From positions 44,698,046 through 44,736,869 of the forward strand of contig NC_069000.1 in the NCBI RefSeq assembly GCF_001194135.2: a DNA stretch of 38,824 bases. The letters are read 5' to 3'. Below the pieces are notes generated by a model. The model was not told the origin of the DNA. It did no database searches and saw nothing but the letters and a program-made list of their open reading frames with translations. Made by a program: the position numbers and the translations under genes. The first letter of the stretch is position 1; the number at the start of each line of letters is the position of its first letter. Of this stretch, positions 217 to 38,233 are shown piece by piece. Source of the stretch: Octopus bimaculoides (taxonomy: Eukaryota).

Positions 217-405
217 CTCTTTGCTCACATCTTTGTCCATACCATCCTGTTGCACAACCTCTTATACAATAACCAGTTTGTTTGTCACATGGTTCTCTGT
301 TTTTACATTGGCCACACTTTTTAATTCCTTTGCGGAAGATATAATAGCCAAGTGGACATGTCCTTACATGATAACGAGGCTCAGGTTTTGCCACAACTCT
401 AGTTA
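217..405 (-). CDS. Linker + Cys-rich repeat exon C (189 nt, 7 Cys)
   Basis: CAG/GTGAGT; [62 protein letters not shown]. Confidence 0.9.
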
Positions 406-6500: not shown

Positions 6501-8574
6501 ACAAATTACTTAGAATTCAAATAAGGGTGAAGGTCTAAATTTTTCTTTCTTTTTTTTCTTTCCTTAATTTAAAGGTCCTTTAAGGTAGAGGACTGGCAGA
6601 ACCGTTGAGCACAGACAACTGCCTTGTGGTATTTCTTCCGGTTCTTTGCATTTCAGTTCAAATCCTGACAAGGTCAGGTCTCTTATCCCTCCAGAACAAA
6701 TAAAATAACCCCTCCCCTCAAAATTGCTGACTTTATGCTTAAATGAAAACCAATTTAAAGGTACATTTATGTTTTAAAGGTACATTTATTTTTCAATAAT
6801 TTAAAAAAATATTTTTACACTTGTTTTATTAGTTAAGCAAGACTCTATCAGACACAATGCTGAAATCAAGACAATGCACATGGTCACTAGAAATAGCAGC
6901 TAATCCTTCCTCAAATCCCTTGCCACCATCTTAAACAAAAGTTAGGGTATATTTATTATAATGTAGTCTTAGAAAGACCTAAATAGATTGGATGGTCATG
7001 GATGGAGTGCCTATGATCATTGGTTGACCGAATCATGATCAACCTCAAGTAAAAACAACAGCAATGTAACATAGACAAAGCAGATAATCGTAAATCTGTT
7101 TGAATCTAATGAATTGGTCTGATGGTTAACAAATCAGACAGAATAATTTGTGGTATTTCTTGTGAACCTCTGTTCTCTGAATTCAAATCACACTGAGGTC
7201 AACTTTACTATTTATTTTATTTTATTTATTTATTGGATGTCAGTAAATTGCATCTCAAAACTACAGCCAATTCTTTTCCTTCTACACCATTTCTCTTTGT
7301 CTTTCTCTTTCCTCTTTGAAAGGGCCTGGCTATGGTCAGACCTAGAGAGAGACACACAGTAGAATGCTCTGCCTGGTTTTAAAAATACACAAGAGACATA
7401 TGTCATAATGATACCCTTGTTAGTCTGTGAGGAGTTGAGAGGGGCAAGACAGGGCAAGGCAGCACAAGAAAGAGCAAGGCAGTGCTAGACAGGGCAAGGC
7501 AGCGCAAGACAGGGCAAGGCATAAAGTTTACTCTCAGCATTACTGGTATTCATTTCAACTGAGCAGGATGAAATGATGAACCCTGCTCAAAGTTATGTTG
7601 TGCAACTCAATCCAGGAATTGAATTTATGATCATCAGCACAAACCCCTAACCACTTGGTCATGTGCCCTCATTATTAAAGTTGATAATAAAATCAACATC
7701 AAATGATAAACATTCTGCATTATGTTCAGACATGGCACATCTGGAGCTACATCATCTAGGTGGCACAAATTCTAACTACACAATTTGTCTGAACATCCAT
7801 AAACATTGAATAAAATCACTAAGTTAACCCTTTCGTTACCAACCCGGCTGAAACTGCCTCTGACTCTGTAGTACAAATGTCTTATTTCCATCAGTTTTGA
7901 ATTAAAATCTTCCACCAAACCTTAGTCACAATTTATGTTCCTAACACTAGCTGAATGATAACTAAGTTAATTTATTAAATTCTTTGTGATATTTAAAGTA
8001 ATTGAAAGAAACACAGCGCATCTCAACAGAAATACAGTAACGAAAGGGTTAAACACATCACCTAATGAACCCACAAAATAAAGGTCCTCATTTAAATAGC
8101 TACACTGCTAAAATAAAATATCTTAAATATGCATTTAATTCTTGTTTATAGTGTCCAACAACTATATTTCAAGGAAAACTGATGTCATTCTAATGACTAT
8201 AAAATAATTTCAGTCTCACCTGTTTTCTTAACATTACATCTTTCACCTGTCCATCCGTCAAGACATCCAAAACGGCAATATCCAGTACGAGGTTCACATC
8301 CTACGCTATCTCGGCAATGGAGACATCTTGATTGGCACATATCACCGAAAAATCCTTGGGCACAGACTGTAAAGTGGAAAACAATTTTTTAATTAATCTC
8401 CAGGTTTCTTTTATTTTTTTCTTTGTAAACAAAACTTTTTATAAAAATTTTTGTCTCTATTCTTGCTTCCATTTTTGGAAAATTCTATTTTTTAATATTA
8501 TTTATTTATTATCCTTGAAAAAATAAACGCTTTTACTCGAAACTACAAACTTTCTATTTTCATTACACTTTCTT

Positions 8575-8605
<31 letters not shown>

Positions 8606-11155
8606 GACTACATACATATGTGCACATACACATACATCAAACAGACACATGCATACATACATGCATACATACATGCATACATACACACATTCATACTACA
8701 TACATATATGCACATACATACATATATACATACACAGATGCATGCATACATACACACACACACATACACACATACACATATACATGCATACATACACACA
8801 CACATACATATTTATAAATACATACACATAAATACACAAACATACATATGCATACATACATACACATACATACATATCCATGTTTTTCAGCCATCTTGAA
8901 ATTATCATACCCCATCATAATTATTCAAATATATTTGCATAAATCAATTATACTTACTCTCACAGATGTAAGGCTTGGATTCTTTGTTGGCACAGGAGCT
9001 GTAAAGATGGGATCCATCTACTCTCTTCCCAATGAAAGCAACGTTAGAAGAAGGTTTTGGGTGTTCTGAATACCAAAGGTTGTTCTTTACATGTTTATAA
9101 GGTGTTCCACAAGACACCCATTCGAAATGGCTGTGCACTTTCTTGGCGCCAACCCAAGTATCAGTCTGGGAAGCCATTCCTGGAGAAAAGATTATTAAAA
9201 AAAGAATGTATCAACTTGAGAAGAACTGAAAGGAAATTGCAAGGCTGGTGCCAAACACAAGGTAAAGTAAGGAATGTTAGTGTAAGAATACCGAAATTTG
9301 GGGTTATCCTCAAGACTCTGAAGAACTGGATGAAATTTCTAAACTGTTATCAGCAATTAACATTTAGCTTCTGCTTTTGCAGCAGAATCTGGGATATCAA
9401 AGAATTTTTGATATTTTGTATGGTGTACTTGTTTAAATCATCAGACTGTGGTCAAGCTGGGGCACAGCCTTGACGATTGTGTTTAGGTAAATGAATCAGC
9501 CCCTGTACTTATTCTTTTGTTCAGCCAGGTAATTTTTCTGTCAGTCTCTTTTGCTGAATCGGTAAGTTATGAGGGATGTAGACATAACAACATCGGTTGT
9601 CAAGCATTTGTGGGGGACAAACACAGACACAAAGACACACACGCACATACATACATACACACATGCAATGGGTTTCTTTCAGTTTCCATCTATCAAATCC
9701 ACTCACAAGGCTTTTGGTCAACCCGAGGCTATAGCAGACAACATATGCCCAAGGTACCACGTTGTGGGACTGAACCCAGAACCATGTAGTTGGGAAACAA
9801 ACTTCTTACCACACAACCATGACTGTGGCTATAAACGAAAAGCAAAGTCATCCCAGGGTTATTAGAACTCAGAACATAAAGAATCAGCAGAAACAATGCT
9901 AGGTATTATGACATATGTACTAACGGTTCTACCATTTAATATTTTGATTCCCAATGAAAATAATTTCTTCAAAAGATTTTTGATTAATTTACTTTGAAAC
10001 AAGAGTGATGCGATATCACCTAATTCCTATAAGACTTTCAGTTTTACAACAAAGTCTTCAAATGGAACATTAAAGATTTTTCCATTTCTCAGTCAATATT
10101 TCAATTCTCAATGAAAATAATTCTTCAAAAATTCTTTAACTTACCATCAAGTAAATGTGTTGCAACATAATTCAATTCAAAGGAACTTTCCAGCCAGACT
10201 ACATTTCCCTTCAAACTACAACATCTGTTCATTGCACCTTCATATGACTTTCTGTCAGTTTTACCGTGTCCAAAGAGATAGTAGCATGTTCCATTATGTT
10301 GGATGACTTTATCAGCATCGATTTCAGGACAGGTTCCTAAAAATAAAACAAGACAACAACAATATAGGTGACCCTAGTTTTTACAAACGCTGGTTGACCT
10401 CATTGGTCCTCTGTGTACACAACTTATTGATCACTTATTAAAGATATCGATTTCAAAGTTTGACGCTAGGCCAGCAGTTTCAGGGAAGGCGGTAAGTCAA
10501 TAACATCAATCCCAGTGTTCAACTGGTACTTATTTTATCGACTCCAGAAGGAGTAAATAGATGAAAGGAAGTCATAGATAATCAGGGAAAGTACATTGAT
10601 GATTTAAATTTCAATTAAATATAACATTTGATCACTTGTTTTCTTTATTCAAAATTCAGACAGAACTTACGGGATGACCTGATAAATGATTTATATAAAT
10701 ATATATATGAATTCGTAAGTGCCTTTCTTATCGTTGATTTTTGGTGTCGCATGGCCAAAAATTACCGTGAATTTTTTTAGAGACACTTTCAAATTTATCA
10801 GAATATCGGACTGATGATTTGGAATAGGGAAATTTTCATTCTCTTAACCATGAAACAATCGTATCCGATTAACTAAAGACTTGTTTTGTTTATGCTTTCC
10901 CCTCCGGTTTTTTGTTCTATGTGTGCCACAAATATCGCCATCCATTTAGAGAAAAATTTGTAGTTTAGAATCAGTAGTTCTTTGACTGCTATTTCTAAAT
11001 TTTCAGTATGTTGGAGAAGCAACTCAATGCTAATCCCTGTATATTTATGATGATAAATGGTTTTACCGATAAAGGTTTTTTCATACTGAACTACTTGGCA
11101 AAATTGTTAATTATTAATTCTATTATTAATTGATGATTCCCTGCCCTTATTCTTG

Positions 11156-11204
<49 letters not shown>

Positions 11205-14200
11205 GTGTGTGTGTGTGTATCTATTATATAATATATATACTACATAATACTTACTATATCATTTGTGTGTATAATGGAATAGTGGTGTTTTAAGGAGGGG
11301 TTAGTCTAAAGACAGTTAAATTCCAGATGGATTTGGTACTCACCTAGATTGCATCGTTTACCTAAGTATTCTTCAATACAGTCACAGATATAGCCATTTG
11401 CTCTGTTTTTACATGTTCCACCATTTAAGCAAGGTTGGGAATTACAGAAATTAACTGAAGAATAAAGAGAATTCTTGCAAGTGTTAAAAAGAAAAATCGA
11501 AAGAAAAATGACAAGAGACAAACGTGTTAATTCTAAAATAAAATCTAAAGATCAACAAGAAATATATAAAATATATAAAAAAAAGAAGAATTATTTTCAG
11601 GAGGGAAGGGCAGTGCCTCTGACCCTTTAACAGGGGCCCCTCGATACTGTAGGAAGCAGGGTGTCTTCACATCAAAAACATGGTCTGAATATTTGCAACA
11701 GACTGGACTCTGCTAAAGATTCCGAAGGTGCCTGATGGTAGTGTTAAACTTAGCCCCCTGGTAGGTCATAGTAAGATTTGAACCCAGAAAGCAAAAAAAC
11801 CAAAACAGATACTGCAAAACAGCTGGCCCAACATTTTACAGTTCCATCAATCAACCACCATGGATTGGTCCATATATATCAATCTCGAAAGGATAACGTT
11901 GAGCTTAGCAAGATTTGAACTCAGAGTGCCATGATTCAGAATAAATACCATGAGGTATTCTATCCATCATTCTAATGATTCTGCCAACAATGGCAAAGCA
12001 TGGCTTTTGGTTACCCTGCATGACAACCCAATTGGCTGACCTGTGCAGTCGCTTTATTGGCTGGCTCATTTCTTTATTCATCACATGGCCACCACTACAA
12101 CAAATATTTATAGGGACAACTACATTATATGCATGTATGTTACATGGCCACCCTGTGGGCTCTGCACACCCAACACACTTTATGCTATTCAACTGTCAGT
12201 CAATTCACTGCCTATATCAGTAGGAATAAGAGCAAAATGGTATACAAAAGGATAGGGTGAAAAAGAATATTGAATTTGGTGACACAGAATAGAAAATTAT
12301 ATAGCTTGTAGAAGAATATGGTAAAACAGAATATAAAGGAATGTAGAAAAGAGAATATACAAGAATGTGGTAACTTACAGCAGGGTTATTAAGAATATGG
12401 TAAAAGAGAATATAGAGGAATGTAGTTAAAGGGAACTTACAGGAATGTGGTAGTTTACAGCAAAGTATTTAAGAATGCAGTAAGAGAGAATATAGAGGAA
12501 TGTAGAAAAGGAAATTCACAGGAATGTGGTAACTTATAGCAGGGTCATTAAGAATATGGTAAAAAAGAATATGAAGGAATATAGTAAATGGAATTTAGAA
12601 GAATATAGTAAATTGTGGCAGGACATAAAGAATTATAAAAGAATATTGCAATGTAGTGAATTGGAATTGAGAGGAAAATAGTAAATTAAAATTTTTAAAT
12701 GCTGTTTTTTTTTTGTTTTTTGTTTTTTTTGCAGAATCAGAATCTCCGTACTCGAAAATGGGGGATTCTGTAAAAAAAGAAAAAAACGAAATGGGGATGG
12801 GGAGGGGGTCCACATTCTTTATGTCCACCAACCAAGAACAAAATGGTTGGATAATATCATTAGTCTTAGTTGGACATGCCTAGGATTCTCTCCAGAAAGT
12901 TCAATGATCATTGCTTCTGATAGGACCCTGTGGATGCTTCGGGATACTACCCTCCCTGGAATAGTGGGTGAAAAAAATGGGTGGATAGATGGTAAATTAA
13001 AGCAGGATTTATAAGAATATGGTAGAATAGATTATAGAGGTATAGTAAAATGGAATTTAGAGGAATATGGTAAATGTAAGCAGGATATGTAAGAATATGG
13101 TAAAACGGAAAAGGAATGTAGAAGAATATCTCGAAACTAAAGAAATGGTTATATGTTGTTTATGATTACTCACAGAGTTCACATTGTTCACCGGAATAGT
13201 TGATTTGACAATTGCAAGTGAAGGAGTAGCCAGTATTGGTACAGGTTCCACCATTTTGGCATGGTGCTGAGAAACAGGCGTTATCTGCAAACACAAAGGG
13301 AATTGAAGGAAAATTGCCAAATATAAGATGACAAATTTGGAATCAAGAATATTTTATAATAACGAGTTGGAAATTATTTTTTTTTAATACTTAATAATTA
13401 ATTAAGGTGGTGAGCTGGCTGAATCGTTAACACACCGAGCAAAATGCCTAACAACATTATGAGTCCGAATTCAGCTACGGTCGACTTTGCATTTCATCCT
13501 TTTGGCGTCTATAAAATAAGTACCAGTTGAACACTGGGGTCAATGTAATTGACTTAAACCTTCCCCCTGAAATTGAAGGCCTTGTGCCAAAATTTGAAAC
13601 CTATATTTAAATATAAGTGGAATAAGAGATTCGTTCCTTGCATAACAAATAAGGATTAGCAACAGAAAGGGTATCTGGTTATAATGAATGCATTAATCAT
13701 GTATTCATCTTACCCATGCTAGCATGAAAAAATAAAAAAGTAAAGCTGAACGAATGAATGAAACAAAAGACTATATTAAACAGTGTCACACTTACATTCT
13801 GTACATTCACTTCCAGTGTATTCTGCAGTACAATAACATTTGTGGGTGTCACCAACTCTGGAGCAGGAACCTCCATTCTTGCAAGGCTGAGAATAGCAGG
13901 GGTCGACTGAAAATCACAAGACAAGTCATGTGAAAGGACATTCAAAATATAATTGGAAATCTTTTATTTTACAAACACCAGTATGATCAATTGATATAAT
14001 AAGGCAGGAATTGTTATAAGTGTTACTTTTTTGCTTTTAATCCTTTTGGGGTCGATAAATTAAGTACCAGTTGCATACTGGGGTCGATCTAATCGACTGG
14101 TCCCCTCCCACAAAACCTTGTTCCTATAGCAGGAAGGATTATTAGTGTTCAGAATCGTTAGCACGCTAGATAAAATGCTTAACAGTATTTCATCTGTTGC

Positions 14201-28300: not shown

Positions 28301-29025
28301 AACAAACAAAAGTGAAACAGAAAGACAAGAAAAACAGAAATGGGATACTTACATTCTTCACATTTCTGACCAGTGCTGCCAGTTGGGCAAATACATAAAA
28401 ATGAGTTGCCATTAGATATACAGGTACCACCGTTGAAACAGGGGTTTGGATCACAAACATTGACTGAAAAGAGGAAGAACAGTGAAGTTTAGTTGATATG
28501 CTAACAATGTGATTAAAAGACAATGGAATTTGGGGATATTTTTGTAGGGCTTCTTTCTGTATGGATGGGAAAAGTTGAGAAAGAAATTTTTCCTCATATG
28601 TTATATTCAAAATGGACAGAGATATGGTGCTAATGCTGTAGGAGGATTCTTATTTTTATAGAACGCTGCCTTATAGGCGCAGGAGTGGCTGTGTGGTAAG
28701 TAGCTTGCTTACCAACCACATGGTTTCGGGTTCAGTCCCACTGTGTGGCACCCTGGGCAAGTGACTTCTACTGTAGCCTCGGCCCGACCAAAGCCTTGTG
28801 AGTGGATTTGGTAGACGGAAACTGAAAGAAGCCAGTCGTATATATGTATATGTATATATATATATGTGTGTCTGTGTTTGTCCCCCCAACATCGCTTGAC
28901 AACCGTTACTGGTATGTTTACGTCCCCGTAACTTACAAAGAATAAGTCCTGGGGTCGATTTGCTCGACTAAAAGGCAGTGCTCCAGCATGGCCACAGTCA
29001 AATGACTGAAACAAGTTAAACAGTT

Positions 29026-29084
<59 letters not shown>

Positions 29085-29094
29085 CTTAGATAGA

Positions 29095-29137
<43 letters not shown>

Positions 29138-29781
29138 GTAAGTAGGTAGGTAGGTAGGTAGGTAGGTAGGTAGGTAGGTAGGTAGGTAGGTAGGTAGACT
29201 AGACAGACAGACAGACGACAGACAAACAGACGACAGACAAACAGACAGACGGACAGACATAGACAGACAGACATAGACAGACAGACATAGACAGACAGAC
29301 ATAGACAGACAGACATAGACAGACAGACATAGACAGACAGANNNNNNNNNNGACATAGACAGACAGACATAGACAGACAGACATAGACAGACAGACATAG
29401 ACAGACAGACACCACACACATACACACACACACACACACACACGGATATGCATACATACATATGCATTTCAATAAACACATGTATTGTCCGTTCATCCAT
29501 GCATACAGGCTTGTGGACAGACGGACGGATGGACGGACAAAGCCGAGAGTGGAGACAAGCAAAAAGATTAAATATTTGGTGGTACGAACTTTCAGAACAA
29601 AGGTCTCCTTCGTACCCAGGACTGCAAATACATTGGAACCTGTTGCCAATCATCATGCAGGTACCACCATTCTGGCAGGGAAGAGAATAACAGACATTGA
29701 CTGGAAAAGACAAAATATAAAAATGGTCAGTTTATAAAACAAAGAGAAGGAAACAAATAGACATCAAAATTTTTTATTTGA

Positions 29782-29813
<32 letters not shown>

Positions 29814-32800
29814 AGAACTGTGATCGTCATGGTAAAAAAAAATGGGGAAAACATACTCAAAACATTATGTAAAATAACAACCATCACTGAAAAGACATTT
29901 ATAGACAGCCTAGGTTCTGTACTAAATTCTCTTTGTTCTGATTGGTTGATCTGTTTTCAGTTCGGCCAGATTTTAGCAGAAGTTTTTCTAATTCTCTCCA
30001 TATTTGAAATTCAGCTGAGAATAAAAACACTAAGAAACCAGAGAAGTGGTCTTAATACTTTTAATCTTTGTCTTCAACAAGTCTCTCGGATGTTCTTATC
30101 CATGACTGTGTTGTCTTCCCATCATCTTGTAGGTCTCCCTACTGGTCTCTTCCTATCTCCTGGATCCCACTTGAGAACTACATGGATCTGCCTTGCAATG
30201 TGCCTGGCCCAGTAGCACTTGTGCCTTCAGTGTTCTGTGACCACATCATTCACTTCACTTTATTTTTGAAATACCTCAATTCAGACACTCTCCATGAATA
30301 TCCATGTCATAGCCATTTGTGGTTCTTCCTTTTCTGTAGTAGCTGGCATCTCACAAGAGCGCAAGTAGGGTGTTCCTATTGAAGGGATTTGCACATCAGG
30401 TCTTGTGCAGCTGTACTTAGAGCACAACTTTTATCAAGGTAAACACCATCCACTCTGTTCTTACTCACAATGGGACTTCAGCATTCATGCCTTGACAGAT
30501 GGATAATGGATCACCTAATAAACTTTAAAATAAATTCCCCCACATATATGTACAAATGTTATTTATAAATAAAGTTGTCTTCTTGTGCAAAACACTTCAT
30601 TTACCATTATTCAGTGCTCACTTCCACATCTAACACGTGACACTCTGTACACCTGTTCAGGTTAATGGAAGGAGTGAACTAATGTAAACTACACACCTTT
30701 GGTTGCTGTAAACAAATCATCTGTGTAGATCTTTAGTAAGAAATTGCAGAACCCTCACCTGTCGCATACGGCAAGAGAGTTCGCAATTTATAAAGTAATT
30801 GACAGATAGATATATCAATAGACTAATAGGAAAATAACATTTATTATAATGAATACATTTATACTCACAGTATTCACAATTACTGCCACTGTAACCTGAG
30901 GAACATTCACAGTGGTAAGCGTATTCTTTAGCAACACATTTCCCACCATTTCTGCAAGGTTTCGTCGAACAGTAATCATCTGGAAATTAAAAAATAAACA
31001 TTTACATTTAACAAAATATTTTTTTTTTTCAATTAATATAGGGTTAGGAGCAAATTTTGTAAAGAAGGGTCATCACTGACTAGACAAACTCCAGTATATT
31101 ATTAGCCCAATAACAAAATTCAATTGGTCAAATTAATCTCATAAGGACTTGCTTATCAAAAGAATTAAACATTGTATTGCATTTAGTCCATGCTCTAAAA
31201 GTAGCAGTCCTGGCCCCTTATATTTTTTTAAATTACAACAGTCAAGATACAAGAGGCACTGCTGGTGACCTTTTCAGATATTCTTCCTACACAAGTGTGT
31301 GATTATTGTGACACCCAACTGACACCCAACCAGAACATTTGAATGTTAAACCTGAGCTAAAAGGCTTTGTTGGTGCAACTAGGGCCATCTCAACAATATT
31401 ATAGTTCTCCTGACAAAGCATATGGAGATTAGCAACAGGCTTCTTGGTCCATGAGACTTCCAGACTAAGAAAATTCACTGTGGCCTGTAGTATTTATTTA
31501 TTGGCAGCATATCACACTGTATATAAATTAGCAAAGAGCTCTTAGATGTGTGGGGGCCCCAAGCAAATCAATGCATTATGGCCTGTTCCTTTTTATTCAC
31601 AACAAACCATAACTTATTTAGATGAGCAATGCGATCATGGGGCCTCTGGGCAAATCCACTTGAGTCTATAATAGTTATTTATTGGCAACAAACCATAGAT
31701 TGTCAAGGGGTTCCTAGACTTGGCGGGCCTATAGAATCTATTAGGGCCTCTAAAATTTATTAGGGCCTCTAGAATCCATTTGGGTGTACAGAATTTATTG
31801 ACAACAAACCACCACAGACATAGATTGTAATTGGGTTCTCAGACATGAGGGACCTGTGAACAATGACTCTGTGTGCCAATCTTTTAAGACAATGAAGGGC
31901 GCCACCAAAAATCAACAGAAGCCATGGAAAAGTTACAGAAATATGAACAGAACACAAAAAAATGAAAAATAAGAAGAAAAAAATAGTTAGCCAGTGGGAA
32001 AAGAAAAGATTTAGAATGGTCAATGGGCTATTTATTCTGCTGGAAAGTTACAAAAATTCCTACTTACAGATTTCGCATTGGTCTCCTTTGAAGCCAATTT
32101 GACAGATACATGTGTAAACAGAGCCTTTCTTTATACAAACTCCACCATTTCTGCAAGGCTGTTTATTGCAAACATCAACTATAAAAGATTAAATGAAGAA
32201 AACCACAAAATTAGAAGAATTTAATAAAACGTTGATTCATTTGAGGTCACCAAGGAAACGTGGCTTGTGTTGAATTTCTTGAAGCTGAATGTTATTCCTG
32301 ACACCAATACATCCAAGACCACCCCTCCTGGTTCTATAATACAAACTTCTTGTTTTAAACTGATCTAAATTGAAACCATCCATCAAAATTTCATATTAAC
32401 TCTCCTGTTTTAACCGTTTTGTTACTGTATTTATTTTGAGATACTCCATGTTTCTTTCAATTAATTTTAAATATAACAAAGAATTTAGTAAAATAATTTT
32501 GTTATCGTTAAGCTAGTGTTAGGAACATAAATTGTAACTAAGATTTGGTAGAAGATTTTAATTCAGAACTTTTGGAAACAAGACATTTGTACTACAGAGC
32601 TAGAGGCAGTTTCAGGTAGGTTGGTGTCAAAAGGGTTAAGAATTGTTTCTCCATTATATATTTTAACCCTTTTGTTACCATATTTCTGTTGGGATGCTCT
32701 GCGTTTCATCCAATTAATTTTGAATATAACAAAGAATTTAGTAAAATAATTTCGTTATCATTAAACTTTTGTTAGGAACATAAATTGTGACTAAGGTTTG

Positions 32801-33873
32801 GTGGAAGATTTTAATTCAAAACTTATGAAAACATGACATTTGTACTCAGAGCCAGAACCGGTTTCAGCCAGGTTGGAAAGAGTTAAATGTCAGCTTAATA
32901 ACAACAAAGATATCTTATTAAATGTTTCATTATTTTCAAGCCTAATTAAAACAATTGCAACAGAGAAATGGTAACAAAAGGATTAAAGTGATCTAAATTA
33001 AAACCTTCCATTAAATTCTATGTTAACCTATGTTCTAAGTATGCAACATCATCATCATCATCATCTTATCATAATCATCATTTAACATCTGTTTTCCAAG
33101 TTGGCATGGGTTGGATGGCTTGAGAAGGGATGGTTAGACAAAAGACTACACCAGGCTTTGCAGTCTGTTTTGGCAGGGTTTTTACATCTGAATGCCCTTC
33201 CTAACGCTAACCACTCTACAGTGTGGACTGGATGCACCGGCACTGGCAGGGCCACCAAACAGCTTGCAAGGCAAAGATCCTTTGAGAAGTGGCGGGGGGG
33301 GGGGCACTGAAGGAGATGGTTTTGTGCCAGGTGAAGAGAAGTTAGAGTGTGACAGAGGGATAAAAACAGGTGTCTTGCTGCAGAGGAGATACATGGTTAA
33401 CCGGTAACCATGTAACATTGGAAATAATCTGGGCTGAGGACAGACTATAACTGAGAATGACATTGGGGTGGTTAGGAACGCGGGTGCTAGTGGGGTGGGA
33501 AGATGTAGAAGTGAGAAGATGTCATTGCTACTTACAGACGTTGCAGTGATTGTCAATGTATCCAATGGGACAGATGCAAGTATAGTCATTGCCAACGTTG
33601 AGGCAGGTACCACTGTTCATGCAGGGAGAAGAGACACAAGCATTATCTGGAAAGGAATGGAAAATACAATGTTACTAGTGAGAATATTCCTTTATTAATT
33701 ACTCATTATAAACATAGAATATGAAGAACACAAACATATGTGTGTGTGTGCATGTAGATGTATATATGCATGTGTGTGTGTTAGAGAGAGGCAGAGATAG
33801 ATAGATAGATAGACAGATTGTCTGTCCTTGTTTGTCCCCTCTATGTTTAGCCCCTTGTGGGCTATAAAGAAAT

Positions 33874-33928
<55 letters not shown>

Positions 33929-33937
33929 GTAGGTAGG

Positions 33938-33975
<38 letters not shown>

Positions 33976-33988
33976 CATAGATAGATAC

Positions 33989-34021
<33 letters not shown>

Positions 34022-34042
34022 AGAGATAGATAAGACAGACAG

Positions 34043-34085
<43 letters not shown>

Positions 34086-36523
34086 AACAGACAGACAGAC
34101 AGACAGATAGATATGTATATACATAAGTATGCCTGTGTATGTGTTTGTGTGACCTTAAAGACCATTATATTAATGAATTCATAGACGTTGGCATATGTAG
34201 AATTTGTACTTACAAACGTTGCATCGATGACCAGTGAAGCCAGATGGACAGTCACATTGGAAAGTATACTCGAAGGTTTTGCAGGTTCCACCATTCAAAC
34301 AAGGTGAGTTGAAGCAGGCATTGACTGTGGAACGTGAATAAATAAGAAATTCAAATGAAATTGAATGCTAACACACTTTTTGGTATCTCTTTAAAAAAAT
34401 GTCAAACTCATACCAATATGGACATTAAAAGCAGAGATAAAAAATCCTGAATATTATTTTGGCAAGTTTCAAGCGATTTCTTTTGTGCTGTAAACCATTT
34501 ACCATTTCTGCGGTGCCCCCTCCTTCCCTTGATGCCCTAAGCATATACTTATTTTGCTTAACGGTTAATCCAGTGCTGCTTTATTTACAGGGCTTTTGTG
34601 ACTGACAGATGTGCAAAAAGGACGAAAGTATCCACAGACTAGGGACCTAAGGAGATCTCATCTGTTTCTCCAGACCAATTGACAGAACAATTCAGATCTT
34701 TAGAGGGTGAATTGTAAGCACGTACCTACAATTCCAAATGCACAGGGTGGTTGGGTTTGTTGGCTGCCCCAACAGAGGGCAACCTGTAATGCCACATGGT
34801 GGACTTAAGTTTGCTACTCAAGCAGGCCATGGAGGGATTCGAACTCAGAATGCAAAAGCAATGGAAGAAACAACCACAAGGAATCTATTACGATGTCCTT
34901 GTAACTCCAGTAATTCCACTGGTCTGGAATGGTACTTTTGTGTCTCAACTTCCAAAGGGGCAAAAGGTAAAGCTAATGATGATGACGACAATGACAACAT
35001 CAACAACGGTGATGAAGGCAACAACAATGACAACGATGATGATGATGATGATGATGATATCATCATCATCATGGAGGTGGTGGTGGTAGCAGTGGTCGTG
35101 GTGATGCTGGTGATAATGATGGTGATGATGATGATGATGATGAGAGTGATGATAATGATGACGACAATGATAACATCAACAACGGTAATGAAGGCAACAA
35201 CAATGATAACAATGATGGTGATGATGATGATGATGATGATGTTGAATTTGAAAGACTTCGCCAGAACGTAAAACTACTCACAATTTTCACAATGTTCCCC
35301 GCTATATTGGTAAGAACATCTACAGGTGTAACCACTGCCACGGTTGGTACAGGTACCACCATGCTTACAGGGGCTGTTTTCACAGTAGTTACCTGAAAGA
35401 GAGAGAGAGAGAGAGAGAGACTAAGTAGTTTGATGCATAAAGCGATTGAGCATACAATAACAGTAAAAAATTTGGGGCACAAGTCTAGCAATCTTAACGG
35501 TTGGGCTTAAATGGATTGCCTTGACCTTAGTGCTTGGTTGGTATTTATTTTATTGACCCAGAAGTAATGAAAGACGAAGTCAGCCTTGGTAGCATTTGAA
35601 CTCAGAATGTTAAACCAGAAGAAATGCTGCTTAGCATTTTGTCCATTGTGCCGACGATTCTGTTAGCTTTCTGAGTAAAATGGATGTAGAGTGGGAGGAG
35701 ATGGAGGGAGGGAGATGGAAGGAGGGAGATGGAAGGAGGGAGAGCAAGAGAGACAGAGGGAGGGGGAGTGAGATGGAGTGAGAAACAGAGAGAGGGAGGA
35801 AGGGAGAAAGAGATGGAGGGAGAGAGAAAGAGAAGCGGGGAGATAGACAGAGAGAGAAAGAGGGAGAGAAAGAGAGTGAAAGTGAGGGAGAGAGAGAAAG
35901 AGAGCAAAAATAAGAGAGAGGAACTATTGTCTTTCGTTTTCCATGTCATCAATTATTTTTATAATTGGTATAACATTAAACTGCATCTGGTGGTGAGGCT
36001 CCAGCTTGGGAGTTCAGAAGTCAGTGGGGTAATCACAGAGTTATTTCTTTGTCTCCACTCTTCTCAGTTCTGCTCTGGTCCAGGCTAGCAGCACCTGTTA
36101 AGGGCCTCAGTTAGGGGTCAAATAGCAGAAAATGGTCCTGTGACTGAGGTATACAGGAGTTGGAAGAGGGTTGATCCCTACCCATGTGTTACACAGACAA
36201 AGAAACAAGGATCTTAAAATCCAGACCGATACTTTTTAAGTACTCTGGGGCCAACTAGATCAACCAGTGAGAAACATTAGATTCTGCACGACTGGTTTAG
36301 GTGTATCTCTCAATGTTGATGTGTCTCCTCAGGTGATTTCAAGAGGCATCTCGTTAAAATAAACTTTGTTTCATACAACTTATTACTGCATGCACGTGCG
36401 TGTCTGTATGTATGTGCATGTGGGTGTGCACATGTGTATGTGTGTTTGAGTATGTGTGCGCATGCGCATGTGTATGGAAATATATAGTAAGAATTTGTAT
36501 TCTAATCACTTATATATGCTTAT

Positions 36524-36587
<64 letters not shown>

Positions 36588-37003
36588 GAGAGATAATAAA
36601 TGTAGTACTTACGTGTCTCACAAGTGGGACCAGTGTAGGTAGAAATACAGTTACATCTAAAGGTTTTGCCAACCACATAGCAAGTTCCAGAATTTTTACA
36701 GGGACCATCAGAGCAATAATCAACTGGAAAAGTAAGAACAAGTTTAAAACATCTGTAAGACGTTGGATGTCTTGCAAACAAGTTATCTGTTACTGAAGCA
36801 CATTTGCATTGAAAAGACACTATTTTATATAAATAATAGTTGCTATATTTCATTTACTAATTGCCATCCCTGAAGAGTGAAGGGTTATAAAATCAGACTG
36901 TTACCTAACACTCTGTTGAGCCTCTAATGCAAAACCAGTTGGAAAGATTGGCCATAATGGATACATACTATTGTACACTTTAATCAATCAATGAATCAGT
37001 ATG

Positions 37004-37042
<39 letters not shown>

Positions 37043-37372
37043 TTGTTTAAAAGAGTTCCAACACTGTCTGTTTTTTATGTTTTATTTATATTCCTGCAGA
37101 ACTAATGTGGGGTATAGAATATGGAATATACAATATATAATATAATATACAATATACAATATAAAATAAAATAAAATAAAAATGGATGGCACCATGAAAG
37201 AAAGTATTGAATGTAGATGAAATATTGAGTGTTCAATATAAAGGATCAAATATATAAATATATAAATATAAATATATAAAGGCGACTCAAGTTTCANNNN
37301 NNNNNNNNNNNNNNNNNNNNNNNNNNNNNNNNNNNNNNNNNNNNNNNNNNNNNNNNNNNNNNNNNNNNNNNN

Positions 37373-37405
<33 letters not shown>

Positions 37406-37677
37406 GATATTTTAAAATCCATGGCAACATACATATTCACTGATTCTGTCACATCATCAATGTATCATATCTGAAAAAGAGGCACACTACAAAGCATAGA
37501 GGTGAAGAGTTACATTTGTTATAGGCTTTAGAGTTTGATGAGATGCTCACAAGGCCAAAGCCTTCATGGATGCGAAACCATTGGTCACTCTATGACCGAA
37601 CATTAACTTTATTACTTTAATATATATCCATATATATAAGAGAAAGAGAGGATAGATAGATAGATAGACAGACAGAC

Positions 37678-37712
<35 letters not shown>

Positions 37713-37930
37713 GGAACACAGATATATTTTCCTTAAGGTGAGAGAATCATATTATTCACACACACACACACACACATATGAAATATGAGTGAAATAATAC
37801 AAAAAATGCATTAACTTACATGTAGAGCAGTCAGTACCAAGATAACCGGGTCTACATCTACATGTGTAAGAAACATCAGTGGTCATACAGCTTCCACCAT
37901 TGAGGCAAGGATTTGAGTAACAGAAGTCGA
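217..37930 (-). CDS. Partial multi-exon gene: >=23 EGF-like repeats + atypical C-type lectin domain + >=4 MEGF/laminin-EGF-like Cys repeats (predicted large extracellular protein; 5' and 3' ends outside window)
   Basis: 29 manually delimited exons, all AG/GT-bounded and phase 1-1, join into a stop-free 3678-nt frame. Joining of the three exons at 217-2638 to the rest (across a 5.6-kb intron containing an N gap) is inferred from phase compatibility only. Confidence 0.85.
1296..1478 (-). CDS. Linker + Cys-rich repeat exon B (183 nt)
   Basis: CAG/GTAAAT; [60 protein letters not shown]. Confidence 0.9.
2447..2638 (-). CDS. Linker + Cys-rich (MEGF/laminin-EGF-like) repeat exon A (192 nt)
   Basis: CAG/GTAAGT; [63 protein letters not shown]. 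Confidence 0.9.
5680..6500 (+). repeat. Two diverged ~270-320-bp direct copies (~5680-5945, ~6190-6500) flanking a SINE
   Basis: Shared TTCTGTTCTTATGATT...GAAGACTCC.TTCT...CATCAAAAGCATAAA...ACATTTTTATTTAA..CACAGC. Confidence 0.75.
5961..6180 (+). mobile_element. tRNA-headed SINE, family A (Deu/Nin-like central domain)
   Basis: B-box-like GAATTCAAATTC followed by GACTTTGCCTTTCATCCTTT.G.GGTC.ATAAATTAAGTACCAG; related copies + at ~13406-13601, ~14030-14325, ~16845-17050, ~27015-27230; - at ~10450-10550, ~35535-35665. Confidence 0.75.
7441..7521. repeat. 20-bp tandem repeat (GCAAGACAGGGCAAGGCAGC)~4
   Basis: Direct read. Confidence 0.85.
7828..8048. mobile_element. piggyBac-like MITE (221 bp)
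   Basis: TTAA|CCCTTTCGTTAC...GTAACGAAAGGG|TTAA: perfect 12-bp TIR with TTAA on both sides. Confidence 0.85.
8220..8366 (-). CDS. MEGF10/SCARF-type 8-Cys EGF-like repeat exon (147 nt; absent from ORF track)
   Basis: CAG/GTGAGA; [48 protein letters not shown]. Confidence 0.9.
8578..8880. repeat. Compound (CA)/(TA)/(CATA) microsatellite
   Basis: Low complexity; source of several spurious ORFs. Confidence 0.95.
8958..9179 (-). CDS. C-type lectin-like domain, C-terminal exon (222 nt)
   Basis: CAG/GTAAGT; [73 protein letters not shown]; WIGL-like WVGA, FEW, W..xP, terminal YICE. Confidence 0.88.
9426..9825 (-). mobile_element. SINE family B copy
   Basis: Reverse complement of the 28675 element (TTTCTTTCAGTTTCC.TCTA.CAAATCCACTCACAAGGCTTT). 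Confidence 0.7.
10145..10336 (-). CDS. C-type lectin-like domain, N-terminal exon (192 nt; absent from ORF track)
   Basis: TAG/GTAAGT; [63 protein letters not shown]; fits long-form CTLD start (CP..., xCYYL, A..xC, E..YV helix 2). Confidence 0.88.
11344..11454 (-). CDS. EGF exon 23 (111 nt; only EGF exon ending in G)
   Basis: CAG/GTGAGT; [36 protein letters not shown]. Confidence 0.95.
12310..13135. repeat. Diverged ~80-bp purine-rich tandem repeat (12310-12640, resuming ~13005-13135)
   Basis: Recurrent AGAATATGGTAAAA.AGAATATA.AGGAATGTAG unit. Confidence 0.75.
12825..12990 (+). mobile_element. RTE-like LINE 3' fragment
   Basis: [35 protein letters not shown] resembles the RTE C-terminal PRT.W.D...A.DR..W pattern. 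Confidence 0.55.
13174..13284 (-). CDS. EGF exon 22 (111 nt)
   Basis: CAG/GTGAGT; [36 protein letters not shown]. Confidence 0.95.
13406..13601 (+). mobile_element. SINE family A copy
   Basis: GGTGGTGAGCTGGCTGAATCGTTA...GACTTTGCATTTCATCCTTTTGGCGTCTATAAAATAAGTACCAG. Confidence 0.75.
13796..13906 (-). CDS. EGF exon 21 (111 nt)
   Basis: CAG/GTAAGT; [36 protein letters not shown]. Confidence 0.95.
14786..14896 (-). CDS. EGF exon 20 (111 nt)
   Basis: TAG/GTAAGT; [36 protein letters not shown]. Confidence 0.95.
15714..15824 (-). CDS. EGF exon 19 (111 nt)
   Basis: CAG/GTAAGT; [36 protein letters not shown]. Confidence 0.95.
16100..16590. repeat. Compound (TG)n-rich low-complexity tract
   Basis: Direct read. 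Confidence 0.95.
16627..16737 (-). CDS. EGF exon 18 (111 nt)
   Basis: CAG/GTAAGA; [36 protein letters not shown]. Confidence 0.95.
17180..17970 (+). mobile_element. Long composite SINE with internal tandem subrepeats and (GAT)n tail
   Basis: Family-B-like head, repeated GGTGGCAC.TAAAA.GCACC units, tail ATTAGGAAGGGCATCCAGCTGTAGAAAC...CCAACCCATGCCAGCATG...(GAT)n; same tail at ~3640-3890, ~20030-20315, ~22305-22490, ~25190-25350 (+) and ~33045-33200 (-). Confidence 0.7.
18219..18329 (-). CDS. EGF exon 17 (111 nt)
   Basis: CAG/GTAAGT; [36 protein letters not shown]. Confidence 0.95.
18975..19085 (-). CDS. EGF exon 16 (111 nt, 7 Cys)
   Basis: TAG/GTATGT; [36 protein letters not shown]. Confidence 0.95.
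19120..19690. repeat. Compound (TG)/(GA)/(GATA)/(GACA) microsatellite with N gap
   Basis: Direct read. Confidence 0.95.
20423..20533 (-). CDS. EGF exon 15 (111 nt)
   Basis: CAG/GTAAGT; [36 protein letters not shown]. Confidence 0.95.
20752..20949 (+). mobile_element. 5'-truncated R4/Dong-like (RLE) non-LTR retrotransposon fragment
   Basis: With two 1-nt frameshifts: [63 protein letters not shown]; abuts (TAA)n at 20691-20748. Confidence 0.7.
21170..21600. repeat. Diverged ~40-bp tandem repeat
   Basis: Recurrent GGTACTATAGG..GTCTTTGTTGATGTT motif. Confidence 0.65.
21720..21830 (-). CDS. EGF exon 14 (111 nt)
   Basis: CAG/GTGAGT; [36 protein letters not shown]. Confidence 0.95.
22758..22868 (-). 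CDS. EGF exon 13 (111 nt)
   Basis: CAG/GTAAGT; [36 protein letters not shown]. Confidence 0.95.
24397..24507 (-). CDS. EGF exon 12 (111 nt)
   Basis: CAG/GTAAGT; [36 protein letters not shown]. Confidence 0.95.
24927..25037 (-). CDS. EGF exon 11 (111 nt, 7 Cys)
   Basis: CAG/GTAAGT; [36 protein letters not shown]. Confidence 0.95.
25718..26606 (+). mobile_element. Internally deleted Tc1/mariner-superfamily DD37D (maT-like) DNA transposon relic
   Basis: Transposase remnant ~25930-26484: ...WQQDSAPC...[17 protein letters not shown]..., 37 residues between the last two Asp, two in-frame TGA. Imperfect 26-bp TIRs: CAGGATGCGATGGATAAATCGTCATC / revcomp CAGGGTGTGGTGAATATATTGTCATC. Confidence 0.9.
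26712..26822 (-). CDS. EGF exon 10 (111 nt)
   Basis: CAG/GTAAGT; [36 protein letters not shown]. Confidence 0.95.
27015..27230 (+). mobile_element. SINE family A copy
   Basis: Same head and central domain as the 5961 copy. Confidence 0.75.
27325..27754. mobile_element. hAT-type non-autonomous element (MITE)
   Basis: 8-bp TSD GATATATG at 27317-27324 and 27755-27762; imperfect TIR CAGGGCTGGATTAAG...CTTAATCCAG; partial second copy at ~34400-34578. Confidence 0.75.
27761..28157. mobile_element. TA-flanked MITE (Tc1/mariner-type)
   Basis: 24-bp TIR TGAGGAGCTTATTTTCAAAACCAG vs revcomp TGATGAGCTTACTTTCAAAACCAG (2 mismatches), TA on both sides. Confidence 0.8.
28353..28463 (-). CDS. EGF exon 9 (111 nt)
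   Basis: CAG/GTAAGT; [36 protein letters not shown]. Confidence 0.95.
28675..29025 (+). mobile_element. tRNA-headed SINE, family B (MIR/CORE-like CCTGGGCAAGTGACTT segment)
   Basis: A/B-box-like GGCTGTGTGGTAAG...GGGTTCAGTCCC; copies on - strand at ~1740-1960, ~4365-4602, ~9426-9825, ~38740-38824. Confidence 0.7.
29025..29465. repeat. Compound (GATA)/(GGTA)/(GACA)/(CA) microsatellite
   Basis: Direct read. Confidence 0.95.
29590..29700 (-). CDS. EGF exon 8 (111 nt, weak donor)
   Basis: CAG/GTTCGT; [36 protein letters not shown]. Confidence 0.9.
30060..30480 (-). mobile_element. RTE-clade LINE 3' fragment (decayed)
   Basis: Minus frame: [37 protein letters not shown], typical RTE C-terminal WAGH...W.P..KR..GRP..RW.D. 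Confidence 0.75.
30869..30979 (-). CDS. EGF exon 7 (111 nt)
   Basis: CAG/GTGAGT; [36 protein letters not shown]. Confidence 0.95.
32068..32178 (-). CDS. EGF exon 6 (111 nt)
   Basis: TAG/GTAAGT; [36 protein letters not shown]. Confidence 0.95.
32414..32882. mobile_element. Two adjacent copies of the same piggyBac-like MITE (32414-32635, 32667-32882), inverted relative to the 7828 copy
   Basis: Same internal sequence (ACATTTGTACT, GGAACATAAATTGT, AAAGAATTTAGTAAAATAA); TTAA flanks. Confidence 0.8.
33536..33646 (-). CDS. EGF exon 5 (111 nt)
   Basis: CAG/GTAAGT; [36 protein letters not shown]. Confidence 0.95.
33790..34145. repeat. Compound (GATA)/(GACA)/(GA) microsatellite
   Basis: Direct read. 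Confidence 0.95.
34214..34324 (-). CDS. EGF exon 4 (111 nt)
   Basis: CAG/GTAAGT; [36 protein letters not shown]. Confidence 0.95.
34400..34578. mobile_element. Partial copy of the hAT-type MITE at 27325
   Basis: Shared ATTTACCATTTCTG(T/C)GGTGC...TTAATCCAG end sequence. Confidence 0.7.
34975..35245. repeat. (GAT)/(AAC)/(GGT) trinucleotide tract
   Basis: Direct read. Confidence 0.9.
35282..35392 (-). CDS. EGF exon 3 (111 nt)
   Basis: CAG/GTGAGT; [36 protein letters not shown]. Confidence 0.95.
36613..36723 (-). CDS. EGF exon 2 (111 nt)
   Basis: CAG/GTAAGT; [36 protein letters not shown]. Confidence 0.95.
37820..37930 (-). CDS. EGF exon 1 (111 nt)
   Basis: CAG/GTAAGT; [36 protein letters not shown]. 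Confidence 0.95.
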
Positions 37931-38020
37931 CTGTGAAGCAATATAAAACCATCATTAATCATTAATCATAACAAAACAACAATGATGCACTTTGATGAAA
38001 CAAAAAAACAATGATTTGTA

Positions 38021-38233
38021 TCAGAAAAATTGAAACCGGTTCAGAAACATTGAAATCGGTTCAGAAACATTGAAACCGGTTCAGAAACATTGAAACCGGT
38101 TCAGAAACATTGAAACCGGTTCAGAAACATTGAAACCGGNNNNNNNNNNAACCGGTTCAGAAACATTGAAACCGGTTCAGAAACATTGAAACCGGTTCAG
38201 AAACATTGAAACCGGTTCAGAAACATTGAAACC
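38021..38233. repeat. 20-bp minisatellite TCAGAAACATTGAAACCGGT, ~10 visible copies interrupted by an N gap
   Basis: Direct read; one copy has a C>T change. Confidence 0.95.

Follow-up and report, generated by a model that had tools for sequence, protein, structure and literature searches.

A regular array of at least 23 class 1-1 EGF exons in Octopus bimaculoides and its potential for exon skipping

When a gene carries a long run of equal-sized exons, each encoding a single EGF domain, is the run used to generate many isoforms by combinatorial skipping, or is its skippability a by-product of its architecture? An earlier note on this locus of Octopus bimaculoides had favored the first answer, by analogy with Dscam, and had also proposed that exon number might vary between individuals. 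We addressed these proposals in the 38,824-nt stretch of DNA analyzed here, referred to as the window.

Anatomy of the array and of the exons that follow it

A six-frame EGF pattern scan combined with exon extraction located exactly 23 EGF units in the window, all on the minus strand (the earlier note names no strand), running from position 37930 down to 11344, in agreement with the limits given in the note (Table 1); on the plus strand, the loose EGF pattern matched only microsatellite translations. All 23 exons are 111 nt long, encode one EGF domain apiece, lie between an AG and a GT, and retain intact open reading frames. Each is of phase 1-1, i.e., its first two nucleotides (TC, TT, AT, AC, or GT) complete a codon and its last nucleotide (T in 20 exons, and C, A, or G in one each) opens the next, and the introns between these exons measure 419 to 1719 nt. 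The exon length, phase, domain content, and intron sizes given in the earlier note were all recovered in this way, with the domain content also seen by Pfam. Donors of the strong consensus GTAAGT or GTGAGT are found at 20 of the 23 exons, the weaker ones being those of exons 8 (GTTCGT, the weakest), 16 (GTATGT), and 18 (GTAAGA), and the acceptors are pyrimidine-rich. Strong donors together with such acceptors resemble the splice sites of constitutive exons. Exon 1 itself starts in phase 1, and 37931-38824 yielded no exon upstream of it, which leaves the 5' end of the array open and makes 23 a minimum for the number of EGF exons. Neither tRNA nor Rfam families were found within the window.

Six more phase 1-1 exons lie 3' of the array, two of them encoding a putative CTLD-like domain and four encoding Cys-rich EGF-like repeats. 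In phmmer searches of PDB, exons 24-25 weakly matched chains of CTLDs, with E-values from 7e-4 to 0.14, among them the tetranectin-derived CTLD 3l9j_C (E=7e-4), NKG2-A (6e-3), tetranectin (0.07), and codakine (0.08). Pfam Lectin_C did not match these two exons at E<=0.01, and a search with the 73-aa CTLD exon among representative proteins returned one match, a repetitive yeast adhesin, which is spurious. These matches hint that exons 24-25 might encode a divergent C-type-lectin-like domain. Pfam EGF_laminin matched the exon 26 region weakly, below the cutoff (E=0.0014), and the Cys-rich repeats had no PDB match. No exon was found in the 5.5-kb stretch between exon 26 and the exon at 2447..2638; agreement in strand and phase is the sole basis on which we infer that the exons below position 8200 belong to the same gene as the array. 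Both ends of the gene lie outside the window. Each of the 29 exons located is of phase 1-1 with a length divisible by 3, and the 23 EGF exons and the six downstream exons all qualify as symmetrical modules of class 1-1.

Table 1. Exons located in the window, in the order of transcription
Feature	Position	Strand	Description
EGF exon 1	37820..37930	-	111 nt, phase 1-1; AG/GTAAGT
EGF exon 2	36613..36723	-	sole exon ending in C
EGF exon 3	35282..35392	-	starts GT; 1-to-3 join would make a Cys codon
EGF exon 4	34214..34324	-	exon extraction
EGF exon 5	33536..33646	-	exon extraction
EGF exon 6	32068..32178	-	exon extraction
EGF exon 7	30869..30979	-	exon extraction
EGF exon 8	29590..29700	-	weakest donor, GTTCGT; last nt A
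EGF exon 9	28353..28463	-	exon extraction
EGF exon 10	26712..26822	-	exon extraction
EGF exon 11	24927..25037	-	seventh Cys, in GYCG
EGF exon 12	24397..24507	-	exon extraction
EGF exon 13	22758..22868	-	exon extraction
EGF exon 14	21720..21830	-	exon extraction
EGF exon 15	20423..20533	-	exon extraction
EGF exon 16	18975..19085	-	seventh Cys, in GYCG; donor GTATGT
EGF exon 17	18219..18329	-	exon extraction
EGF exon 18	16627..16737	-	donor GTAAGA
EGF exon 19	15714..15824	-	exon extraction
EGF exon 20	14786..14896	-	exon extraction
EGF exon 21	13796..13906	-	exon extraction
EGF exon 22	13174..13284	-	exon extraction
EGF exon 23	11344..11454	-	last nt G; join to exon 24 gives Gly
Exon 24	10145..10336	-	192 nt, phase 1-1; putative N-terminal half of divergent C-type-lectin-like domain (CTLD); AG/GT, frame continuous with exon 23
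Exon 25	8958..9179	-	222 nt, phase 1-1; putative C-terminal half of CTLD-like domain, ends ...KPYICE
Exon 26	8220..8366	-	147 nt, phase 1-1; Cys-rich laminin/MEGF-type EGF-like unit
Cys-rich repeat exon	2447..2638	-	192 nt, phase 1-1; CPxGxY...CGQCK..PCD..TG.C..GC.PGWYG..C
Cys-rich repeat exon, second	1296..1478	-	183 nt, phase 1-1; paralogue of 2447..2638 (78% nt identity)
Cys-rich repeat exon, third	217..405	-	189 nt, phase 1-1; paralogous, 73-80% nt identity

Domain type, divergence, and copy number

The cysteine spacing C-x4-C-x5-C-x8-C-x-C-x8-C is invariant in all 23 exons, as the earlier note had it, with an extra seventh cysteine in exons 11 and 16. The array was matched by Pfam EGF (PF00008; E=5e-148, 21 stretches, 480.7 bits versus a cutoff of 21.5) and hEGF (PF12661; E=2e-78, 256.7 bits versus a cutoff of 29.3); EGF_CA was not among the matches, and the cbEGF N-terminal motif D/N-x-D/N-E/Q-C before C1 was present in 0/23 repeats. 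Judged from their sequence, the repeats are Notch/fibropellin-type, non-calcium-binding EGF domains. The glycosylation consensus of Notch-type EGF domains is C1-x-S-x-P/A-C2 for O-glucose and C2-x4-S/T-C3 for O-fucose, and the two sequons are present, as motifs only, in 17/23 and 15/23 repeats, respectively. The linker before C1 reads [FY]-[DN]-x-C, and at 20 of the 22 native EGF-EGF junctions, the split codon encodes Phe or Tyr.

The closest database proteins are fibropellin-like, Notch-like, and crumbs-like, with 30-45% identity. Word-index protein searches with the 850-aa array, with a tail of 299 aa, and with a concatenation doubled to 2450 aa returned only multi-EGF proteins (27-50% identity), and exact look-ups of two window ORFs gave no match; these searches retrieved neither a transcript or protein of the locus itself nor an ortholog. 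The array is like the sea urchin fibropellins (uEGF/SpEGF I) in its long run of 37-38-residue Notch-type repeats, and fibropellin-1-like proteins were among its best matches (34-40% identity). According to the fibropellin literature of 1989-1993, each EGF repeat is reportedly a separate exon, and two mRNAs are said to differ in repeat number via alternative splicing. We rejected assignment to the fibropellin family, or as a fibropellin ortholog, on the grounds that identity is only 30-45% and that a CTLD-like domain and Cys-rich repeats, not an avidin-like C-terminal domain, follow the array; Pfam found no avidin domain within the window, the 3' end of the gene lying beyond it. Compared to Notch, the array consists of repeats that are not of the calcium-binding type and leads into a CTLD-like domain, and no Notch LNR, heterodimerisation domain, TM segment, or ankyrin repeats were seen in the window, outside which the gene ends lie; the visible architecture is not Notch-like.

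The exons are as divergent as the earlier note had claimed, with a mean pairwise identity of 53% at the nucleotide level (range 41-65%), 41% at third codon positions, and ~43-46% at the amino acid level (maximum 59%). Despite ~46% amino acid identity, there is not a single indel among the 23 units. Neither a gradient of identity with distance nor a block duplication was seen in the array, and the EGF introns have nothing in common but short dispersed transposon fragments in differing positions and orientations. Repeat (transposon) families of the window matched the Octopus sinensis contig VCDQ01001822.1 in alignments of up to 528 bp at 70-90% identity (E=1e-98), which fits DNA of an octopus-like cephalopod. 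A Tc1/mariner transposase remnant called by eye at 25876-26223 was dropped, as it had no Pfam support. The pattern of divergence suggests that the EGF exons are ancient tandem duplicates. The array appears to have been shaped by purifying selection after duplication, since, divergent as they are, all 23 exons keep an open frame, canonical splice sites, and six cysteines at invariant distances. The invariant length agrees with selection for interchangeable units but is no proof of it.

The assembly has five gaps (N runs), which fall in introns 1/2, 8/9, 12/13, 15/16, and 16/17, touch no exon, and raise no question of frame. They are surrounded by (CA)n, (GATA)n, (CATAGACAGACAGA)n, or AT-rich repeats, and the two flanks of 4 of the 5 have a motif, or a 47-90 bp sequence, in common; an exon hidden in one of them is unlikely. 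A gapped assembly, with duplicated flanks at two gaps, could suggest that the array is an artefact of assembly duplication, or else a set of decayed pseudo-exons with no working gene segment. We give this reading hardly any credence: a duplicated assembly would yield near-identical copies, whereas the 23 units all differ (at most 65% nucleotide identity), and decay would bring stops or lost cysteines, whereas frames are open, six cysteines are present, and splice sites are canonical throughout.

The tandem layout, and gaps that could in principle conceal collapsed copies in five introns, would also be compatible with the proposal that unequal crossing-over makes EGF exon number vary between individuals or haplotypes. 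Unequal homologous recombination is disfavored because the repeats are only ~53% identical at the nucleotide level and their introns are unrelated, leaving no long identical tract; moreover, the gaps fall in microsatellites with matching flanks, and an assembler cannot collapse copies this divergent. In copy-variable arrays of the LPA KIV-2/CR1 LHR type, by contrast, units and introns are nearly identical. Variation in exon number at this locus is thus very improbable. The Cys-rich exons at 217-2638, with 73-80% identity and apparently younger, are a separate case; they are better, although still weak, candidates for copy-number variation.

Frame neutrality and the extent of exon skipping

We then considered what the frame of these exons permits. 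All 231 non-adjacent joins among the 23 EGF exons are in frame and form sense codons from the exon ends and starts listed above, as the earlier note had found for the joins it checked, and 196 of them regenerate the native Phe/Tyr linker residue. The claim that any subset can be skipped in frame was therefore correct, but the property is not special to the EGF cassettes, given that all 29 exons in the window are of phase 1-1. In-frame joining follows from class 1-1 exon-shuffling architecture: class 1-1 modules predominate in extracellular proteins built by exon shuffling, and symmetrical exons are readily skipped without loss of frame (Patthy; PMC8001218, PMC6335736). Frame-neutral exons encoding one EGF each permit skipping without showing that the octopus gene uses it.

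A documented version of the proposed process is found in CD97/ADGRE5 and EMR2/ADGRE2. EGF-domain exons of CD97 are skipped whole, giving the isoforms EGF(125), EGF(1235), and EGF(1-5), which differ in ligand binding (PMC9101421). Unlike the octopus array, these vertebrate genes have 3-5 mostly calcium-binding EGF domains in an adhesion-GPCR stalk, and they are related to it by domain type only. Nearer in form are several invertebrate RefSeq sets, all computational models, in which whole units of 37-38-residue EGF arrays are missing singly or in combination. The models X2-X6 of Nematostella LOC5507636 and X2 of a Littorina fibropellin-1-like gene equal X1 minus 39-190 aa, cut at the inter-EGF linker; Mercenaria LOC123523940 (X1-X12) combines deletions of 38, 76, 114, and 152 aa that fall at no fewer than 10 positions; and O. 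sinensis X6/X7/X8 (XP_036356789-91), from a gene with a 37-residue period and a motif similar to those of our array, differ by 37 and 111 aa. The repeats of most of these comparators are more alike (mean 50-83% aa, some identical) than those of the octopus array (46%, maximum 59%). A Delta-like gene of O. sinensis was rejected as a skipping precedent, as its EGFs are encoded in one 2.1-kb exon and the 73 aa by which its isoforms differ do not reflect a skipped exon.

With these precedents, the array could be read as a substrate for combinatorial cassette skipping, its isoforms varying in EGF number and composition and serving recognition or adhesion diversity. Such a reading is consistent with the in-frame joins and restored linkers, the strictly invariant unit length, the weaker donors of exons 8, 16, and 18, the layout of 111-nt exons between ~1-kb introns, which has been linked to skipping (PMC6335736), the whole-unit variation of RefSeq isoforms in related genes, and the distinct binding of CD97 isoforms (PMC9101421). 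Against it, donors are near-perfect consensus in 20 of the 23 exons, the EGF introns lack common conserved elements, and frame neutrality is uninformative, being common to all 29 exons and to class 1-1 genes. The comparator isoforms are computational models, and several come from near-identical repeats (up to 100% aa identity), for which mis-mapped reads can fake junctions. Furthermore, if exon 11 or exon 16 were skipped without the other, a cysteine would be left unpaired, and joining exon 1 to exon 3 would create a cysteine. On balance, we consider broad combinatorial skipping unlikely. Still less probable is its strongest form, in which cell-specific combinatorial splicing yields a great many isoforms at the cell surface or in the matrix and the unit length and Phe/Tyr codon were selected for interchangeability.

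The Dscam analogy is not supported either. Dscam1 and the arthropod Dscam-hv genes do share with the array tandem, equal-sized paralogous exons that encode one (half-)domain each, with a fixed framework and a variable surface. However, Dscam picks one exon per cluster by docking-site/selector RNA pairing, whereas the octopus exons encode consecutive domains of one polypeptide and the mode proposed for them is skipping; mutual exclusivity of the Dscam kind would leave a single EGF. The octopus introns share no docking- or selector-like sequences, and 20 of 23 donors are strong.

Alternative splicing on a limited scale has a considerably better standing, falling just short of an even chance: one or a few cassettes, e.g., exon 8, might be skipped in some tissues to give a handful of length isoforms. 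Both the precedents in CD97 and annotated isoforms of related multi-EGF genes and the uneven donor strength at exons 8, 16, and 18 point this way. This possibility does not conflict with the explanation we prefer, which in part includes it. Because related genes have isoforms lacking whole EGF units, some skipping at the octopus locus is plausible by analogy.

A probable class 1-1 mosaic gene

The explanation we prefer, and hold as a whole to be probable, is that of a class 1-1 mosaic gene with an ancient EGF array under purifying selection, its skippability being a by-product. The window would cover at least 29 internal exons of a large minus-strand gene whose product is a mosaic protein, either secreted or in the membrane; these exons would encode at least 23 tandem EGF domains, then a CTLD-like domain, and then at least 4 Cys-rich laminin/MEGF-type repeats. 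Tandem duplication of exons in the distant past (exon shuffling) would have produced the array, after which selection would have preserved the residues that define the fold, a unit length of exactly 37 residues, the aromatic linker residue of the split codon, and the O-glucose/O-fucose sequons. In-frame skippability would then be a by-product of class 1-1 architecture, with no evidence of a dedicated diversity generator. Because the splice sites are strong and the exons conserved, most of the 23 EGF exons are predicted to be included by default, with at most a few alternatively skipped. Given the many cassette isoforms annotated in related genes, skipping could nonetheless exceed what we assume here.

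The array is like the class 1-1 EGF modules described by Patthy in having one EGF per exon, phase 1 introns on both sides, and lengths that are multiples of 3, and likewise in its tandem layout via exon duplication and its 1-1 neighbors (CTLD-like and Cys-rich). It does not differ essentially from such modules in general, except that it is unusually regular, with 23 equal units at ~46% amino acid identity. Skipping of EGF cassettes and its tie to symmetrical exons have already been described, and the locus opens no new question in this respect. Were the combinatorial reading correct, skipping would represent a new route to cell-surface diversity in a neurally complex animal group, and the array would be a skipping-based counterpart of Dscam or clustered-protocadherin diversity. 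Either way, the locus offers a clean class 1-1 EGF array that is useful to illustrate exon shuffling, and, unlike the near-identical arrays of several related genes, its exons are divergent enough to make junction reads unambiguous, which makes it convenient for long-read cDNA.

Anatomy of the EGF array and its neighboring exons

A six-frame scan of the whole window for the EGF cysteine pattern revealed 23 EGF units, each encoded by the minus strand; elsewhere in the window, the pattern matched microsatellite translations only. Upon exon extraction, each unit proved to lie in a segment exactly 111 nt long, with AG just ahead of it and GT just after, and in phase 1-1 (2 nt before the first complete codon and 1 nt past the last). 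The spacing C-x4-C-x5-C-x8-C-x-C-x8-C is kept in 23/23 units, and the intervening introns measure 419 to 1719 nt. The exon size and phase, the intron range, and the cysteine spacing described in the earlier note were thus borne out in every detail; the note leaves the strand unstated. The last nucleotide is T in 20 exons and C, A, or G in one each, while the first nucleotide pairs are TC, TT, AT, AC, and GT. The joined exons (2553 nt, no stop) encode an 850-aa array that matched the Pfam families EGF (E=5e-148) and hEGF (E=2e-78). Since exon 1 starts in phase 1 and no exon was found upstream of it (37931-38824), the array may extend further in that direction.

The EGF array belongs to a longer transcription unit, with downstream exons on the same strand and in continuous phase (see table). 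Together, the 192- and 222-nt exons nearest the array may encode a divergent C-type-lectin-like domain (CTLD): a Pfam search of these exons reported nothing, and the segment matched four different CTLD proteins among PDB sequences, i.e., a tetranectin-derived chain (E=7e-4), NKG2-A (6e-3), tetranectin (0.07), and codakine (0.08). The three paralogous Cys-rich exons at the low end, approximately 1.1 kb apart and 73-80% identical in nucleotides, share the motif CPxGxY..CGQCK..PCD..TG.C..GC.PGWYG..C; their tandem duplication is much younger than the EGF array, and this second array runs past the window's low end. For the Cys-rich repeats, Pfam yielded only a laminin-EGF match below threshold, and PDB sequences yielded no match. 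Between the 147-nt exon and these paralogues, no convincing exon was found in 5.5 kb of the minus strand (2650-8200, including a 216-N gap at 3034-3249), which may be either a single long intron or the border of two genes. Neither the protein of this locus nor a close ortholog was among the database protein matches, the best being an Octopus sinensis multi-EGF protein with 45% identity.

Features of the window, with EGF exons numbered in transcript order
Feature	Position	Strand	Remarks
EGF array	37820-37930 (first in transcript) to 11344-11454 (last)	minus	
EGF exon 8	29590-29700	minus	
EGF exon 11	24927-25037	minus	
EGF exon 16	18975-19085	minus	
Exon, 192 nt	10336-10145	minus	AG/GT, phase 1-1; CTLD-like part
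Exon, 222 nt	9179-8958	minus	AG/GT, phase 1-1; CTLD-like part
Cys-rich EGF-like exon, 147 nt	8366-8220	minus	AG/GT, phase 1-1
Cys-rich exon, 192 nt	2638-2447	minus	AG/GT, phase 1-1
Cys-rich exon, 183 nt	1478-1296	minus	AG/GT, phase 1-1
Cys-rich exon, 189 nt	405-217	minus	AG/GT, phase 1-1
Repeat family 1	9426-9832, 28673-29136, 4427-4608, 1745-1900		Also in O. sinensis contig
Repeat family 2	5959-6180, 27013-27229, 13454-13613, 14030-14143		Also in O. sinensis contig
Repeat family 3	32408-32879, 7824-8053		
Minisatellite, 20-bp unit TCAGAAACATTGAAACCGGT x ~11	38021-38233		10-N gap inside; just upstream of EGF exon 1
Minisatellite, 79-bp unit x ~4	12312-12687		Last EGF intron; related copy 12990-13129
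Minisatellite, 20-bp GC-rich unit	7442-7521		
Gap	18553		(CA)n flanks
Gap	29342		CATAGACAGACAGA repeat flanks
Gap	19260-19343		~90-bp duplicate flanks, 19170-19259 vs 19344-19433, 94% identity
Gap	24283-24292		~47-bp identical flanks, 24236-24282 vs 24293-24339
Gap (fifth)	37297		AT-rich sequence on one side, (AT)n on the other

Age, constraint, and number of the EGF exons

Pairwise identity among the 23 EGF exons averages 53% in nucleotides (range, 41-65%) and 43% in amino acids, with third codon positions at 41%, near saturation. Comparison of all 23 exons revealed neither a distance gradient along the array nor a block-duplication pattern, and comparison of their introns found in common only short transposon fragments of varying position and orientation. 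Because the exons are divergent without gradient or blocks and the introns are unrelated, the duplications are old. In all 23 units, the reading frame nonetheless remains open, the six cysteines and canonical splice sites are retained, and the length is identical; this retention despite age points to purifying selection on each. Conservation extends beyond the cysteines, with the consensus [FY]-[DN]-x-C-x-S-x-P-C-x-N-G-G-[TS]-C-...-G-x-x-[YF]-x-C-x-C-x-x-G-[YF]-x-G-x-x-C. Judged by motif presence, the O-glucose sequon (C1-x-S-x-P/A-C2) occurs in 17/23 units, the O-fucose sequon (C2-x4-S/T-C3) in 15/23, and the calcium-binding N-terminal motif in none of the 23; the units are Notch/fibropellin-type non-calcium-binding EGFs.

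Variation in exon number between individuals, proposed in the earlier note, is disfavored by this divergence. Unequal homologous recombination requires long near-identical tracts; with exons at most 65% identical and introns unrelated, frequent polymorphism of this kind is therefore highly improbable, and an assembler would not merge exons so divergent into collapsed copies. Five flagged N runs lie in introns 1/2, 8/9, 12/13, 15/16, and 16/17, four of them with matching flanks, and look like small or false gaps inside simple repeats; the two with duplicate or identical flanks look like unmerged overlapping contig ends, i.e., a small artificial duplication with no missing sequence. Neither exon nor reading frame relies on these runs, and an extra exon hidden within one is unlikely.

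The interspersed repeats of the introns are SINE-like, with 70-86% identity between copies and no tRNA-like head detected by ARAGORN or Rfam. Window repeats (for example, 9426-9832, 28673-29136, 4436-4608, and 5979-6180) find matches in VCDQ01001822.1, an unrelated contig of O. sinensis, at 70-90% identity over up to 528 bp (E=1e-98), a divergence about the same as that between copies within the window; G+C is 36% in both sequences. This sharing assigns the window's source to an octopus-like cephalopod. Microsatellites of the types (GATA)n, (AC)n, and (AG)n also abound in the introns. A 115-aa open reading frame in intron 10/11 (25876-26223, plus strand) resembled a Tc1/mariner transposase remnant by eye, an assignment left unsupported, with no Pfam match at E≤0.01 and no exact gene-position-index match.

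Skipping of EGF cassettes

The earlier note had proposed that the cassettes may be skipped in combination, as the joins it checked gave sense codons; we found this to be true of all 231 possible non-adjacent joins. Because the split codon is T/TY or T/AY, encoding a linker Phe or Tyr, at 20 of 22 native junctions, a native-like linker is restored in 196 of these joins; the others yield Leu, Ile, His, or Asn, and one (1 to 3) Cys. As paralogues split at the same codon, the cassettes would be interchangeable at the protein level, which exceeds a mere sense codon. Such interchangeability is also what defines class 1-1 modules, the symmetrical modules to which the domain types of metazoan exon shuffling belong, and symmetrical exons arising from exon duplication have an intrinsic tendency to frame-preserving skipping (Patthy reviews; PMC8001218, PMC6335736). 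Skipping is thus structurally possible but not particular to the cassettes, since every exon in the window is frame neutral. Some limited skipping is plausible, with a likelihood approaching even.

No support was found for the comparison to Dscam. Donors are GTAAGT or GTGAGT in 20/23 EGF exons, with good polypyrimidine tracts and weaker donors only at exons 8 (GTTCGT), 16 (GTATGT), and 18 (GTAAGA), and comparison of the EGF introns found no common docking/selector-type elements; marks of regulated or stochastic exon choice are absent. Exons 11 and 16, which are among each other's nearest paralogues (62% nucleotide and 56% amino acid identity), each have a seventh cysteine in matching position (..PGYCG..). 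These odd cysteines could pair mutually or with some other partner, and they would make it harder to skip one exon independently of the other; together with the Cys-creating 1-to-3 join, they argue against free combination of cassettes. A combinatorial splicing system on a Dscam scale is quite unlikely. Exon 8 has the array's only clearly non-consensus donor (AAA/GTTCGT) and belongs to the two EGF exons in which the codon spanning the 3' junction does not specify Phe/Tyr. It would be the first candidate if any cassette is alternatively skipped.

EGF-cassette skipping is documented for CD97, whose isoforms EGF(125), EGF(1235), and EGF(1-5) have distinct binding (PMC9101421). Among the array's database relatives, RefSeq isoform sets, which are computational models from clusters chosen for carrying isoform labels and hence a biased sample, vary by entire EGF units: O. 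sinensis X6/X7/X8 (1535, 1498, and 1424 aa; deletions of 37 and 111 aa), Nematostella LOC5507636 X2-X6 (X1 minus 39, 76, 114, or 190 aa) and Littorina X2 (X1 minus 40 aa), both cut in the inter-EGF linker, and Mercenaria LOC123523940 X1-X12 (combined deletions of 38, 76, 114, and 152 aa at at least 10 positions), with junction artefacts possible in several of these genes that have near-identical repeats. An O. sinensis Delta-like gene was rejected as a precedent, its isoform difference not being exon skipping. Another precedent comes from sea urchin fibropellin mRNAs, which vary in EGF number.

Altogether, the feature is real and regular: class 1-1 EGF modules, with exons easily told apart in sequence, were duplicated in tandem long ago within a large cephalopod mosaic gene, and the possibility of skipping is generic, having been described before in principle and in examples.
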